DNA from: Trichosphaerium sp. ATCC 40318
Taxonomy: Eukaryota > Protista > Tubulinea
Direction of reading: 5' to 3'
Length of the DNA: 64,000 nt
Assembly (NCBI GenBank): GCA_038496445.1
Contig: JALMLS010000304.1
Span: 248,001 to 312,000 of the forward strand
The position numbers and the translations under genes were made by a program. The first letter of the stretch is position 1. Every line of letters begins with the position of its first letter. Shown here in pieces: positions 7,055 to 63,982 of the stretch. The notes beneath the pieces are model-generated. The model did no database searches, was not told where the DNA came from, and saw nothing but the letters and a program-made list of their open reading frames with translations.

Positions 7055-7679
7055 TTATTCAATCTTAATGTCGGTGGTCTTGGCTTCCTTCTTGGTAGGA
7101 ATATCAACCGTCAAGATACCGTGCTCGCATTTTGCAGAGATTTTGGAGGTGTCGGACATTGGTGGTAAGCGTGCTGATCTGACAAATTTTCCAGAGTATC
7201 TTTCGCTTCTGATGACTTCACCGCTGTCAGACTTTTCCTCAGTTTTAGAGGAGGTTTCTCCCTTGATCGTGAGCATGTTATCAGGATCCAAAGATAACGA
7301 GATATCCTCCTTCTGTAATCCAGGCACTAGAGGTAACAACATTAGCTGCGAAACACTTCACTGAGTTTTTTAAAAAAAGAATTCTCAAGCAAACGTACTT
7401 TCAACTGACATTCTGTAACCGTCGTCAGTTTTAACGATATCCATGGCAGGTCTTCTAGTATCCATCTAAACCAACTCTTAGCGAGACGACTTGTAAACGG
7501 TTTTTTGTTAAAGATTAATCCCAAGATGATGTTTGGCGTACGTCTTTCATTAGACTTGGCCAATGACGCCTATGTCTTGGGTACGGATCGAATACGTTGA
7601 GAGGGAAGTTAAAAAAGTCATCCATCCAGTATCCAAGTTCGTTTGGACGTCTGTGAGTTAGTTCGCGCTGTTGTGCCAT
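7055..7679 (-). CDS. Small heat shock protein (HSP20/alpha-crystallin), 2 introns
   Basis: PAMDIVKTDDGYRMSVE|MPGLQKEDI...LTIKGE...ERYSGKFVRSARLP...AKCEHGILTVDIP...IKIE. ATG at 7679. Confidence 0.92.
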
Positions 7680-56680: not shown

Positions 56681-58898
56681 ATGACAGAACCTGCTACGGA
56701 CTTTAATATAAGGATAACGCGGGCATCGAAGGACTTGCACTCATCATGCAAGATAATTGTTGCAAAAGCGGTGTTGAACGCCATACAAAGCAGCGAACTT
56801 CTAACACTCGCTAAAGCTTCGGTAAGTACTTAAAAAATGCTGTGCGCTCTAATAGTACTCAGACTGCTGCGTTGAGGTTGATGTTCGACATTATTCGCGA
56901 AGCGCAACTCAAGTATACTTCCGGTATTCACCAACGCATTTTCGACGCTGTGGACGTAGTTAAAGACAAACTACGTCAACAAGTTGGCGCACTAGTAAGC
57001 AGCGCAAAAGCAGTCGCCGAGCGCAAAGGTATGTACTAACAGTGTTTAAACGCAGCTTTAACAACAATATAACAAGGTGTCAATGAACAAGCGCTACAAT
57101 CGTCATTGAAACATATTGAAGCGATTATAGCAAAGCTAGTATCTGTTAGCAAAATGATAGTTTCACAAAAAGGTACCACAAGTTCTTAGCGCACAACCAC
57201 AATAAGGAAAAATAAACTCCGAACGTTTTTGCTTCATGAAGGAGTGCCATTTTCGCGTATGTGTTCACCAACTAATCCATACAAGGTGGCAAGAGGCATT
57301 CAAGACATTCTACTCCTACATCAAAGCGTACACGTTCTCGGTCAACGCCAACCAAGTACAAAGCCTGTTCACATTTATTCAGTGTCATAACTATCTTTCA
57401 GAAAAGTGCACAGACGATCTTTTAAAGTTGGTTCTAACTCACCAATAATGGGTCCTAAAGACGAATATGTACTATTTAAGATGACTAGATATCAGGTTTT
57501 CTTAGACAAATATGTAGGTTTGCTCTGGTTGGGTATTAGAAAAGCATGCTTCTGTTCCTAAAACAGGATTACCCAATTGGATAAATCTTAACCGAAAATG
57601 GTTTGAAACTTTTTTCATTGGAAAGGATTATGGACATGTTACAGCACACACTAAATCAGCTGGACAACTAGCCATATCTCTTTGTACTGAAAGGGTACGG
57701 TTTGCTTGTTATAAATTGTTTAAGAAGTACTAAATGCGTATATAGAAGCCACAACCAGGAGGAGTTATTGCGCTTATTTTCCGAATAATAATTCGAAGCA
57801 AAAATGTGCGTGGTAAACAAAAAAACCCAACACATTTTGACATTTTATTAGGGAGTCAAAAAGACTCTTGTTCGCGCAGCACAAAGAACAGAGGGAAAAG
57901 CTTGGGAGAGTCAAGTAAAATCAGTTTTGTTGAGTATCATACCAGATATGGAGAGGGTGTATATTATCCCAAAAGAACACAACCGTGAGCTTGAGCAGTA
58001 TTTTATCAATTACGAAATGAAGGACCTACGTGTAACCAAACAATTCAAGTTTGGCGTATTATACATGAAGAGAGGTCAAAGCAATGAAGAGCAAATATTT
58101 AGTAATAACCACAGTATGTTATAGCGAGTATTCAGTTACCCAATACTAATGTATGAAAATAGAGAGCGGTAGTAAAGACTATGGAGAACTGCTGCGAATA
58201 CTTGGTAACAAGGTGCAAATGAAAGGCCTAACAAAGTTCACAGGTGGCCTTGATACCGTAGGTAAGTGCTTGTATACATATGAATGCGTACGGATAGTGT
58301 TTCTAACTTGTGTGGCTTGTAGATGATGCCACTGGTAAATATTCTGTTTATACCAAATTCCGACACTATGAAATCATGTTCCATGTAGGAACTTTGTTGC
58401 CTACAGAAAAGAACCCTCAACAAGTACGTCATAAGAAAGGCTAAGTGCATTCTTTCATTTGCTTATTACGTCCATAGCTGGCTAAAAAGAGACATATTGG
58501 TAACGATATTGTTGTTATTGTATTTAGAGAGGAAGATGCTGACGAGTTTATGCCGTGCTGGGTTAAATCAAATTATATCCAAATCTACGTTGTTGTTACA
58601 CTAAAAAAGAGAGGGTTAGTCTCATTAAGACATTGATACAGTGACTAACTAAAGACTATTTAGACGTGCTACTACGGGGTATTCAGTGCAAGTAATGCGT
58701 CACCAGGATGTACCAGCATTCGCACCAGCGATAAAAGTCGAATTCGACCATGATGAAAAATTCCGTATTTGGTTGCTTGAAAAAGTAGTCAATGGTGAAC
58801 TTGCTGCATATCACAGTAAATTATTCGAGACACAATTTAGACGTACATTTGTAACATTATTAGATGATTTATTGACAAAACTACCAAAAAAGAAATGA
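56681..58898 (+). CDS. Rap/Ran-GAP domain protein
   Basis: FKFGVLYMKRGQSNEEQIFSN, FTGGLDT, YEIMFHV, KKRHIGNDIVVIVF, KVVNGELAAY. Confidence 0.92.
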
Positions 58899-58955
58899 GC
58901 ACGTTTTTGTGTTAAAAAAAAAATCAAAATGTAAATAAAAACAAATTGAAAGCAC

Positions 58956-58974
58956 GGGGACGCATAGGTTTTCA
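58956..58974 (+). repeat. Left terminal inverted repeat
   Basis: ggggacgcataggttttca is the exact reverse complement of 61982-62000. Confidence 0.95.
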
Positions 58975-59082
58975 AAATTCCAGAATTCTGAGAAATGCGA
59001 CAACTTCCAGAACTTTCTGGTAATTTCGAACGTTTCAAAAAGTTACAGAACTTTGATGCCAATAAAGCAAAAAAACATTTAT

Positions 59083-60034
59083 TTAATTGTGTGTCCATGG
59101 ACCATAAGGTAAATACCTGACTCTTGTCTTCAGTACAATATTACTAGCATGTGCAGTCAAGTACAATGCACTAGCTAGTGTTTGAGGAGTGCCTCTAAAG
59201 CTTTGACGAAACATGCTGTGGCTTTTAAAGAAAGCATTTATCTGCTCCACTCTACTTCTGTAATGTGAGATCACTTTGTTGGTATAGTGTTGGTGCAAAG
59301 TCAGGTTTCCATTGGGTGGGTATTTAGTGGTACATAAGCAATCTCTGTTTGCTATGTAATGTCCATCACCTAAGATACGCTCCCATGGTTGAGTTGGGTG
59401 GTATGCTGCAGTATCAAGCCAGATATGCCCATCATACTTTGAACCTAAAATTGAACTGTAAAAAAAAACAAAAAAAAATTTCCACGTGAACAAAAGAACT
59501 AACCAATGTGTGGTCCCGTGAACACAATAATGTCACCTAAAAATGAACAACCTAGCTGCACTTTCCAACAACAGCGTTTATATTTGCCGTTGTAAAGGCA
59601 AGAATGCATAAATGGATCTGTAGGTGCCTGCACATAGATTGGCATTGTGTCGACCATCCCAGTTACATATTTAGGAAAGTGCGGCGTGTGGTTATAAGGA
59701 TCTAGACGTGAGTTCCACTGAATTTCGTCCATAACATCAGCCAAAGCCTTCATTTTTGGTAGAATCCGCGTAGATAGGGCGTACTGAGTAATGCCAAGGA
59801 CATTTGAGCTTCGCCATGTTGTATAAAGATGAATGTAGCTAAAATAGATTGTTAGCTAACAACAATACCTTATACGCACCTAAACATTTGAAAAACATCT
59901 AGTTCGTACAAGTTAGGAACCAAAGGTTCATATTTCGCATGAATATAGCGTAGAACCTCTTTATCATAACCAGACTGAGACTTACAATTAAAGTCTGAAA
60001 CAGCGTCAAATGTCCAGTCCACTAAACGAGGCAT
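59083..60034 (-). CDS. DDE transposase (DDE_Tnp_4 / HARBI1-like), 2 introns
   Basis: GMVDTMPIYV (D1), YNGKYK...KVQ, G|SKYDGHIW, ILGDGHY (D2), RSRVEQINAFFK (E). The frame is intact after splicing. Confidence 0.9.
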
Positions 60035-60387
60035 TGATAGTAATTGTAACCTAAAACACCAGCTTGTTAATATTTTCGGGCACCAATTAAACAATGCAAA
60101 ATGAACTTTCATAGCATATAACAACAAGGAAATTAAAGGTTGACATGGCGTCAAATGACAAGTCCGCTAACAAGACATTTTTAGATTTTTGGCTTTTCGG
60201 GTACTAACTAAAACACCATGTTTTGGACATTGTAGTATCCATTTGGCAATTAAATGAAGGTATCTACAAGTGTTATTTTTGACGGCAGTTTGATAATAGG
60301 TTTATTTCATTTACTCTTCGGGCAATATTTTAAACCCGAAAAGTTGTTAAAGTTCAAAATTTCTTAGTTCGAAACCAATCACAACAC

Positions 60388-61649
60388 ATGAGCAATATAA
60401 CTAAAGAAGGTATTAGAAGGGCGCTTACACCTGCAGAGTATGAGGTGTTGGTTGAGCGCATGTGGTCCATGCGCTACCCACCAAGTAACTACTGGCAAGT
60501 TTTAAACACCAAGTTATGCATCAACAACTTGAAATACCAATTCAAGATGGCTCACCTTCGAGCTGAACGCCGAAACAGGGCACAAGATCTTCCCCAATGG
60601 CTCACGGACAAGAACTCCACTTTTGTACGTATTTTTAGACCACCTATTATTGGTTGCACCTAATAAAAGTTAGACAACAAGAGATCGTTACACCAAGCCC
60701 ATGGATCATCGACGTAGATCAAACACTTTTGGTGACATTTCAATCGACCCAGAAGAGCATCAAGCTTTTCAACGCAATCCTTTTGTTTCACCTAAGCGAG
60801 TAAAGAGACAACAGCGCATAATTAATTTAGTTGATGAGGATGAACGTAAGCTTGTAAATTTAACTGTTTTTTTACCTTTTAACATTTTTCGTAGCTTTGA
60901 ATCCAAGTTCATCTCTAGAGCAGGTTCTGGCAGTGTTAAGGCAACAGAATTACCCTCGTGACGTTGTTGAGTTTGTTCGCGCTAATCATATTGATGGTGA
61001 TGTTTTGTTTAACTTCACTTCTGATGATAAGAGCGTGGTTGAACCACTTAGTGTAGGACACGCTAGCAAACTTTGGAGATTTTTTACTAGTATCAATACT
61101 GCTTTAGGCACGTGTGCTTTTTTTTTCTGACATTTTCTCTCGCTGACTTTTTTTTTCAGAATCAGCACCTCAAATACGTCACAAGGCTGTTTTGACTCCT
61201 CGTGATGTGAACCAAGCTATTGCCAATAATATGAGCCTTCCTCGTTCGTATGTGGGTGCAAAACTGTGGCCAGATGATCATGAGCTTGTGGAAAAGGCTG
61301 AAAAGAGAAGGTATGAACCGTTTTGTTGTACTCAAAGTAATTAGATTTTTTTGTAATTGATTTATGTAGGAAAAGGCGTAAACGCTCTTTAGAGCGCCGT
61401 GAAAAGAAAAGGGCCAAAACCGCTACAAAGGAGAAAGATCCACCATTGGAGAGAATACAAACAACTCTCCGTGTACGTGACACCAGAGTTCATACTTTAG
61501 GCAAAAGTGAAACTGCCTTGCACCTGCAAGCCATTCAAGCTGGTGCCTCTCAAACTGGTCCAATTCAACGCGCAAGAAAAGAGAAAAAGAAGGATCCTGA
61601 CTACGAATACGCAGTAGTTGAAGAAGAAGAAATCAGTTTTGATGAATAA
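60388..61649 (+). CDS. Transposon partner protein: divergent Myb/SANT-like N-terminus, SAM domain and basic tail, 5 exons
   Basis: LTPAEYEVLVERM...YWQVLNTKL...LKYQFKMAHLR (Myb/trihelix-like spacing). SLEQVLAVLRQQNY...FVRANHIDGDVLFNFTSDD...LSVGHASKLW (SAM). KRRKRRKR NLS-like stretch. Confidence 0.7.
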
Positions 61650-61806
61650 ATACTTTTTTTTTTATTGTAAGTGTTTTAATGTCACGTGATTGTGTTTGTT
61701 AAGTGTGTTTTTTGTTGTTTCTTTTCCTTGTATATGTGTGACTAGTTTTGAGATGTTGTTTATGTAATAAGGTTGTCAACCATCAGACTTGTTCTTACAC
61801 TTGCAT

Positions 61807-61975
61807 TGAAAATTCCAGAAGATTCTCTAGAAACACGGAACACTCCAAAAGGAGCTTCAAAAATTGCTGTAATATTCTTTCAGTACACCTTGAAATATTC
61901 CAGAAGATTCCAGAAGGTTCCTTTGCTTGAATTCTAGAAGGTTTTGAAACTTCCAGAATTTCAAGAACTTCTGTA
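61807..61975. promoter_or_regulatory. Subterminal array of nGAAn/nTTCn pentamers (HSE-like)
   Basis: Perfect alternating runs: 4 units at 61807-61826, 5 units at 61897-61921, 3 units at 61945-61959. A similar but weaker array lies at the left end (58977-59050). Confidence 0.75.
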
Positions 61976-61981
61976 ATATTA

Positions 61982-62000
61982 TGAAAACCTATGCGTCCCC
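61982..62000 (-). repeat. Right terminal inverted repeat
   Basis: tgaaaacctatgcgtcccc. Confidence 0.95.
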
Positions 62001-62191
62001 CTCAACTCGCAAACGGTGTTTGTGGTTTTTACAAAGACTAGAAGTTCGTTCAGTGGTAAGTTATTTCGATGTTAATCGCGTTCCGTGGGTTACAAAATGA
62101 TCAGGCTGATTTTCTCGTAGTTTGTAATTTCTCGTTTTGTCTGCCTATGAGATTATCGTAAAACGCGTCTAGAGAACACAATACGCTTGTT

Positions 62192-63982
62192 ATGGCGGCT
62201 CCGAGTACTGATGAAGCTAAAAGCGTAGAAAAAGATGATATTAACACAGTACTGATTATATACACCGGAGGTACGATAGGGATGGCGAGGAACGCAAACG
62301 TACGCTAGTCGTTGGTTTTATAACCGTAAACAAATTCGGTATATAATCTAAACTGTGTTATACGCTTTTAGGGCGCTCTAGCACCCAAACCGAATTACTT
62401 GGAACAGAAATTAGCTTCTTTGCCTCAGTTTCATGATCCAGCATACCCAAAGCTTACAACTCCTCTGACACGCTTTGGAAATCGCACAAGATACCAGTTG
62501 AAAGAGTATGATCAATTAATGGATTCTGCGACAAGTCAGTTTGACACTTGCCACAATGTCGTCTAAATTTGTTCGTAGTGGACATGGGAGATTGGCTGGT
62601 TATTGTTAATGACATCGCATCAAACTATGACAAATACGACGGTTTTGTGTGCGTAAACAATCTATAAACCATGTCATTAAATTCTCTATCTAGTGTGCTT
62701 CACGGGACAGATACTATGGCGTATACATCTTCGGCACTGTCGTTTTTCTTAGAGAATCTTTCCAAACCGGTTATTGTCACTGGCTCGCAAGTACCATTAG
62801 GCGTACGTACAACGTAATGTGACTTTATTAACGTTGCGCGTAGGAGGATCCGAATGATGCGACTGGCACGTGCTGTTTGAAATAAACTTAGTCAACTACA
62901 TTCTTTTTTTTCCAAAGTCAATAGACTTAGACTAACGTTATGTTTAGATAATTTACTGGCGTCAATAATCATTGCCGGTAACTTTAGCTTACCAGAGGTG
63001 ATGTTGTTTTTTAACAACAAATTACTCAGAGGCAATAGATGGTACAGCAATTGAATCGTACATGATGTAATTAACTTCTGCCTGTTAGTATTAAAGCAGA
63101 TGCTGCCGGGTATAACGCCTTTTCATCACCAAACTATACTACTCTTGGATCACTAGGTACTTAAAATTAATGTTAGCCTTTAACAATACGGCAGGCATAC
63201 GAATAGAGATAAACTGGGGCTACATTAGGTGAGTGTCACGTGCAAAATACTATCAAATTGTTTTGTGCTATTAGCTCACACTAAATCAAGGCCACCTCCA
63301 TCTTCAAATATGTCGTTAGTTGCTCACAATGAAGTATGTCGTAACGTTGGTGTATTGAAGATATTTCCGGGAATACCAGCAATGTAAATTTATTCAGTAC
63401 ACTGTATCCGTCTGCTAACTTTTGTATAGGATTATTAAGAATTTTTTGAGAGAGCCTTTACAAGGTAATTTTGCTGATAGTATCTTTTCACAATGTTCCA
63501 CTTATAATGCTATGAAGGTTGTGTCTTAGAGACGTTTGGTTCCGGAAATGCTCCTACTAACCGTAAAGACTTTTGTGATGCGTTAAAAGAAGCATGTGAT
63601 CGAGGTGTTATCATTGTATGTTTTTTGCTTGTTGTTTTTTTTAAAGAGTAAGTGATGTTTAGGTTGCAATTACACAATGTAGTAAAGGTTCTGTTAGCGC
63701 AACGTATGCTTCAGGTACTCAATTTTAGTTATTTGTAAGTTGTTCATCGCGTTCACAAACCAAAAGGATCTCTTCTTTATGAACAAGGGGTAATTTCTGG
63801 CGGAGATATGACAACTGAAGCTGCACTAACAAAACTCGCGTACGCTGTTAATACTAAATGCTAATGTTTTTGAGAAAGTAACATGTCATAGATACTTATG
63901 TGGTTGTGATTACTTAACAAACGATGAAATTAAACGCTACATGTCAATGAACATGAGAGGCGAACTTACAAATCGAGGTTAG
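62192..63982 (+). CDS. Type I (cytosolic) L-asparaginase, multi-exon; may continue past the window
   Basis: [64 protein letters not shown]. The TAG at 63980 could instead lie inside an intron. Confidence 0.92.

Follow-up and report, generated by a model that had tools for sequence, protein, structure and literature searches.

The window analysed here, a 64,000-nucleotide stretch of the Trichosphaerium sp. ATCC 40318 genome (contig JALMLS010000304.1), contains at positions 58956-62000 a 3045-bp transposon that is best explained as the one autonomous member left in a PIF/Harbinger-like family. The ends of this element and of its relatives carry repeats of the palindrome TTCYRGAA (Y, pyrimidine; R, purine) that read as perfect arrays of the alternating nGAAn units of a heat-shock element (HSE), to which heat-shock factor (HSF) binds. 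Judged from the sequences, the repeats are on balance probably family-specific binding sites of an element-encoded protein that resemble HSEs through their geometry. A TTC/GAA palindrome with a 2-nucleotide centre, set once per helical turn, amounts to an alternating nGAAn array, and because the resemblance follows from the architecture of the site, it is no proof of control by HSF.

Terminal repeats of the window copy and its relatives

The HSE definition asks for three or more nGAAn units, contiguous and inverted, and the window copy has four perfect arrays of 3, 4, 5 and 3 units, all located where a sequence-only reading of this DNA had placed them. One array of three alternating GAA/TTC units in 5-bp phase lies at the left end (59005-59017), and arrays of four (61808-61825), five (61898-61920) and three units (61946-61958) follow one another at the right end. 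The left array belongs to a subterminal repeat region (58975-59060) with three copies of the 15-nucleotide unit AAnTTCCAGAAnTTT, and it continues as a decayed 10-bp tandem that reads TTCCAGAA ct TTCTGGTA at TTCGAACG. The right subterminal repeat region (61806-61981) has four copies of a 15-17-nucleotide unit, GAAAnTTCCAGAAGATTC, and holds, in addition to its three perfect arrays, TTCTAGAA at 61932 and TTCAAGAA at 61960. The repeat of the window element is thus a 15-17-nucleotide direct repeat, longer and more specific than nGAAn. The pattern TTCnnGAAnnTTC has 8 matches in the 64-kb window compared with 0.81 expected from shuffles, seven of the eight being in the element ends. The outer 2 x 200 bp contain 8 copies of the 8-mer TTCnnGAA where the rest of the window predicts 0.13 (Poisson P ~1e-12), and the 2.6-kb element interior has none.

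The 70-Mb assembly contains one full copy of the element, and a truncated relative with 77% amino-acid identity is present on contig C485, where the terminal inverted repeat (TIR) GGAGATGCATAGGTTTCCA is followed by three copies of TTCTGGAA. A genome-wide search for long arrays leads to miniature transposable elements with inverted repeats (MITEs) of about 695 bp with at least 4 copies (L020 902-1596), of 64 bp (L034 1487-1550) and of 46 bp (L044 1487-1532), together with additional single family ends. The 46-bp and 64-bp MITEs consist of two TIRs plus two or three TTCYRGAA 8-mers and nothing more. Pairs of TIR words 89 bp apart occur at three further places, given as coordinates only (C167:132569-132657, C167:138490-138578 and C229:3118-3206). 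Part of the TIR-like ends (n = 10) were read as sequence, most words being known by coordinate, and in 8 of the 10 ends read the 13-nucleotide TIR core GGAGATGCAYAGG leads directly into TTCYGGAA-nn-TTCYRGAA, a perfect four-unit array. The end module of the family can thus be written GGAGATGCAYAGGT-TTCYGGAA-nn-TTCYRGAA, with two 8-mers at 10-bp spacing. Of 34 perfect 8-mers, 33 have a pyrimidine-purine step as their centre, and close neighbours are spaced by exactly 10 bp in 10 cases out of 12, the longer spacings of 18, 19, 24, 26 and 27 bp being out of phase. Arrays in the relatives reach 6-7 units. The sequence-only reading had staked its proposal in part on other copies and MITEs keeping the phased pentamers, and these are present in them.

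Genome-wide, four-unit arrays (TTCnnGAAnnTTCnnGAA) number 53 compared with 26 for a reversed-pattern control, and TIR-like words (GGRGAYGCAYARGTTT with at most one mismatch) number 69 compared with 18. A TIR-like word adjoins 29 of the 50 arrays listed (at least 29 of 53 overall), 19 arrays starting 14-16 bp from one, and among the other arrays several are recognisable as degenerate ends of this type (L041, L043). At least 29 of the 53 arrays are in family ends and the control count is 26, which means that about all of the genomic excess in four-unit HSE-type arrays comes from the family. The suggestion that the element spreads HSF sites consequently holds at the level of sequence.

The TIRs of the family fall into different types. 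All MITEs seen carry the variant GGAGATGC, and the sole other word of the type found in the autonomous element (GGGGACGCATAGGTTC) is at G000:C93:161235-161250. Because the MITEs use the GGAGATGC variant, the element that mobilised them may have been the extinct C485 lineage rather than the window copy. As a separate observation, the MITEs and degenerate ends at L019/L020 (C3), L038 (C70), L041 (C96) and L043 (C148) have F-box-LRR neighbours at four loci and MORN-repeat neighbours at two, and on C70 the MITE separates the F-box frame from the LRR frame of what looks like a single gene.

A sister Harbinger element of 4739 bp (L012 2787-7525), present as three identical copies (L012, L013 and L014), encodes an intronless transposase 46% identical to that of the window element. 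Its TIRs differ, and it is flanked by clean 3-bp duplications (AAA/AAA and ATT/ATT), with ATT/ATC observed as well. Like the window family it has TIRs with two adjoining palindromic 8-10-mers and a related transposase. Each sister end has two TATCGATA palindromes at the position equivalent to the TTCYRGAA repeats, a sequence identical to the 8-mer of the DRE promoter element of Drosophila. No TTCYRGAA repeats and no homologue of the second gene of the window element (ORF2) are found in the sister element, the accessory genes being different. Between the two families the end palindrome and the partner gene thus differ together, and the transposase core is common.

Element anatomy, genes and transcription

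The left TIR, GGGGACGCATAGGTTTTCA (58956-58974, plus strand), is the perfect 19-nucleotide complement of the right TIR at 61982-62000 (minus strand), the match extending to 22 of 23 positions. The TIR word is absent elsewhere within the window (expected 0.02). These short TIRs are shared with the MITEs, in which GGAGATGCAYAGGTTT agrees with the TIR at 14 of its first 16 positions. The element occupies what would otherwise be a spacer of about 250 bp after a RapGAP gene (stop at 58898), and its flanking triplets, CAC on the left (58953-58955) and CTC on the right (62001-62003), agree at two of three positions, a putative 3-bp target duplication that is imperfect and not TWA. The typical target duplication of the PIF/Harbinger superfamily is TWA. 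The MITEs are flanked by GCT/GCT, AAA/AAC, GAC/GTT, TTA/AAA and AGT/CTA; no consistent target-site duplication is found across the window copy and the MITE copies read, and a TWA duplication is found in none of these or in the sister family. A duplication length of 3 bp is plausible.

The transposase gene, identified as DDE_Tnp_4 by Pfam and seen spliced in RNA contigs (run X1), is on the minus strand (59083-60112) and has 309 codons in three exons (60112-59880, 59838-59504 and 59444-59083, the stop included in the last), with an inferred start codon at 60112. Both introns, 59879-59839 (41 nucleotides) and 59503-59445 (59 nucleotides), are GT..AG. Here and for ORF2, protein searches and fold predictions were done per exon. 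The DDE_Tnp_4 match scores over the cut-off (E 2.7e-10) across profile positions 42-152, and the preceding exon corresponds to positions 1-49, so that the two exons together cover profile positions 1-152. The exons are colinear with the intronless sister transposase, and the residues D (MVDTMP), D (KYDGHIW) and E (SRVEQIN) are kept. The 309-codon frame is therefore an open IS5-like DDE transposase with an intact D-D-E, as expected of a PIF/Harbinger element. The perfect 19-bp TIRs and the intact triad that had been claimed for this element are both there, and the description of it as an intact Harbinger-type transposon is borne out by the DDE_Tnp_4 transposase, the open frame, the TIRs and the related MITEs.

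The partner gene, ORF2, is on the plus strand (60388-61649) with 350 codons between an ATG at 60388 and a stop at 61649, and one spliced RNA contig (X1) spans its four junctions. Its five exons (60388-60624, 60674-60845, 60895-61107, 61160-61310 and 61370-61649) are separated by four introns, the third of which (61108-61159) is GC..AG rather than GT..AG and is backed by the spliced contig. Exon 1 encodes an orphan helical N-terminal region, presumably the part that would bind DNA; the linkers of the protein are basic and its tail is acidic. No domain match to exon 1 is found in Pfam (E up to 10), PDB sequences or the ESM Atlas, and a HMMER scan of 1.84 billion representatives returns just two repetitive, unrelated proteins, which are spurious. 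The single-sequence AlphaFold model of this exon is helical and of low confidence (predicted local distance difference test score, pLDDT, 67), and Foldseek finds no match to it in the PDB at E <2. Exon 3 is weakly SAM-like in three independent searches, with Pfam matches to SAM_1 (E 0.095) and SAM_2 (E 0.15) that are both below the cut-off, a weak match to PDB entry 2dkz (E 0.33), and SAM proteins as the top three clusters in the ESM Atlas (score 0.87-0.88). Its single-sequence model is poor (pLDDT 62), again with no Foldseek match in the PDB at E <2. No homologue of ORF2, exon 1 included, is found in its own genome, in the sister element or in degraded copies. The partner had been called Myb-like, and of this description the second gene stands, as a spliced and expressed frame of 350 codons, and the Myb-type domain is unconfirmed, none being found by the per-exon searches of Pfam (E <=10), the PDB or the 1.84 billion representatives.

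Both element genes are transcribed and spliced, as seen in contigs from public runs of two studies. Their start codons point away from each other on either side of a 275-bp central spacer (60113-60387), a presumed bidirectional promoter that is without TTCnnGAA, and because of this divergence the repeat-rich ends and their arrays lie 3' of both stop codons. An antisense spliced RNA on the minus strand (60289-60903), seen in runs X2 and X5 of one study, is placed opposite ORF2 exons 1-3 with introns at 60555-60401 and about 60875-60792, both GT..AG on that strand. It has stops in every frame and is thus non-coding, which leaves two readings, an independent antisense RNA or an extended 5' leader on the transposase mRNA. 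The overlap of sense and antisense transcripts at ORF2 may feed RNA silencing. At the right end, RNA contigs at 61663-62102 and 62143-62500 run nearly continuously from the ORF2 3' end through the right TIR into an asparaginase-like host gene (ATG 62192), reflecting either read-through or a start within the element.

Proteins that may bind the arrays

In cut-and-paste elements, subterminal repeats as a rule serve the element's proteins as binding sites. The TTCYRGAA palindromes at 10-bp spacing beside the TIRs would be the cis-acting transposition signals of the family and would most likely be bound by an element-encoded protein in dimeric or higher oligomeric form. The best candidate for this protein is the 350-amino-acid ORF2 product, on the model of Harbinger3_DR and of ORF1 of Ping/Pong, and the end-bound partner would then recruit the DDE transposase. 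Here we infer both the identity of the binding protein and that its binding is a requirement of transposition.

Several features favour sites for a protein of the element. The arrays abut the TIRs in 8 of the 10 family ends read, and the 8-mers are all that remains between the TIRs of the 46-64-bp MITEs. The arrays are placed 3' of both genes and not at the shared central promoter. The length and specificity of the repeat unit relative to nGAAn, with its nearly invariant pyrimidine-purine centre (33/34), and the covariation of palindrome and partner gene with the sister family are likewise suggestive of a dedicated binding protein. There is also precedent: in Harbinger3_DR a 9-bp subterminal motif is the target of the accessory protein, which recruits the transposase (PMC9710019), and the ends are bound by ORF1, which sets the transposase in position (PMC2836001).

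Other observations weigh against this assignment. In the autonomous copy itself the TIR-adjacent 8-mer pair is degenerate, and the best arrays are 40-190 bp inside. The per-exon searches reveal no recognisable DNA-binding domain in ORF2, and none is recognised in the N terminus of the transposase. Because HSF also prefers a pyrimidine-purine centre, that feature does not discriminate between the two kinds of binder; moreover, three to four pentamers go into one repeat unit and some family copies match the classical 14-nucleotide CTnGAAnnTTCnAG box exactly (CTGGAACGTTCCAG in L028), which would suit an HSF trimer very well. Common ancestry links many of the family ends, so that the counts given above are not independent events and overstate the independent evidence.

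These points lead to the first alternative, that the arrays are genuine HSEs to which trimers of the host HSF bind on heat, enhancing the element genes and their neighbours, with the family spreading heat-responsive sites through the genome. Judged from the sequences, we regard this as possible but less likely than sites for an element protein. The host encodes a canonical HSF-type DNA-binding domain with a conserved recognition helix (KYFKHSNFCSFVR / QLNTYGF), intron-split and the only one found in the genome (L017 ~1400-1640; G000:C8:686.7 kb), by which the perfect arrays could be bound. An HSE reading is suggested by the perfect arrays of 3-7 units, some with the full classical box, and by the contribution of the family to the whole genomic excess (at least 29 of 53 arrays, control 26), which parallels the Caenorhabditis Helitrons (PMC6927752). 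The right-end arrays are also 234-384 bp upstream of the ATG (62192) of the asparaginase-like gene, into which the RNA contigs cross, and MITE copies precede F-box-LRR and MORN genes at a distance of 0.1-0.7 kb. An HSE is expected upstream of the gene that it regulates, but for the element's own two genes the arrays are downstream, and neither the coupling to the TIRs nor the retention of the 8-mers in 46-bp MITEs is predicted by a purely transcriptional role.

The heat-shock genes of the host also count against that role. No perfect three-unit HSE is present within 700 bp upstream of four intronless HSP70 genes (L047-L050) and of the HSP20 gene in the window (7061-7679, minus strand, ATG 7679), so that canonical arrays are at most a candidate heat-shock signal of this host. 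The upstream regions have only near-matches, that of HSP20 containing one TTCCAGAA at about -155, and the four HSP70 genes share GGAAATTCCACAGAAAT, a conserved box, at about 95 bp upstream. Since these regions are without a canonical three-unit array, the host's own HSE is not definable from them.

A second alternative combines the two roles. HSF would be a host factor of transposition, acting in end recognition or in end architecture, and the ends would have evolved as HSEs set against the TIRs, HSF opening or bending the ends alone or with ORF2, so that heat stress would gate excision of the element and its MITEs and the family would thereby have seeded most of the strongest HSF-type sites of the genome. 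Such an arrangement would account for the perfect match to an HSE as well as for the placement beside the TIRs in the mini-MITEs, and it would agree with an ORF2 protein that has no recognisable DNA-binding domain. We nevertheless consider it improbable, as the sister family manages with another palindrome and no precedent was found in the literature; to our knowledge, HSF has no precedent as a host factor of transposition.

That the arrays are functionless, a chance by-product of 10-bp tandem duplication in AT-rich subterminal DNA, is very improbable even though the region 61897-61921 is a plain 10-bp tandem repeat of 2.5 copies, as the 8-mer is found at both ends, in the C485 fragment (77% amino-acid identity) and in the MITEs with variant TIRs, at a fixed distance from the TIR and with an enrichment of P ~1e-12, and as the differing internal sequences of the family ends argue against recent copying from one another.

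Meaning and comparison with known systems

If the arrays are only sites for the element's own protein, the family would be a natural example of a transposon recognition signal that mimics a host regulatory element, with dozens of strong HSF-type sites scattered without selection for a heat response, and inferring regulatory "wiring" by transposons from motifs would call for caution. Should HSF bind, this would be the first PIF/Harbinger family that we find reported with HSEs and the first with HSEs at the TIRs, and stress sensing would be coupled directly with the machinery of transposition. In both cases the 46-64-bp mini-MITEs delimit a candidate cis-requirement of very small size that is easily testable.

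Transposable elements with HSEs on record include ONSEN, the Caenorhabditis Helitrons, Alu and TCN3 (PMC7329337, PMC6927752, PMC12810828). No naturally occurring PIF/Harbinger element or MITE that has HSE-type ends was found in a literature search, in agreement with the earlier remark that no description of this was known for PIF/Harbinger elements. A close parallel in genomic distribution is that of the Caenorhabditis Helitrons, for which HSF-1 binding and heat induction have been shown by experiment (Garrigues et al. 2019, PMC6927752). In both cases one DNA-transposon family has most of the strong HSE-type sequences of its genome, scattered near genes. In the Helitrons, however, the HSEs are internal to rolling-circle elements, whereas here the element is of the cut-and-paste type and the arrays, HSE-type by their sequence, abut the TIRs. 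ONSEN, a Copia element of Arabidopsis, and other long-terminal-repeat elements such as TCN3 of Cryptococcus are likewise transposable elements with HSF-type motifs (PMC7329337, PMC12810828), but their HSEs are in the long terminal repeat promoter upstream of the transcript, in contrast to the present arrays, which are at both ends and downstream of both genes. A synthetic derivative, mPing_HSE, in which six HSEs are present, still excises and inserts (PMC11254759). It is a PIF/Harbinger MITE with HSEs and illustrates that the combination is mechanically compatible; the HSEs are engineered cargo inside mPing and not a natural subterminal repeat.

In its organisation the window element is most similar to Harbinger3_DR of zebrafish and to Ping/Pong of rice with the MITE mPing, which are two-gene cut-and-paste systems in which a DDE_Tnp_4-type transposase is paired with another protein. 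The similarity extends to the short TIRs, the repeated subterminal motifs and the derived Tourist-like MITEs. Differences occur in the partner protein, which here is without a detectable Myb/SANT/MADF domain and has a middle domain that is weakly SAM-like, and in the flanking triplets, which are non-TWA and imperfect in most copies read. A further difference is in the subterminal motif itself, which in the present family coincides with the HSF consensus.

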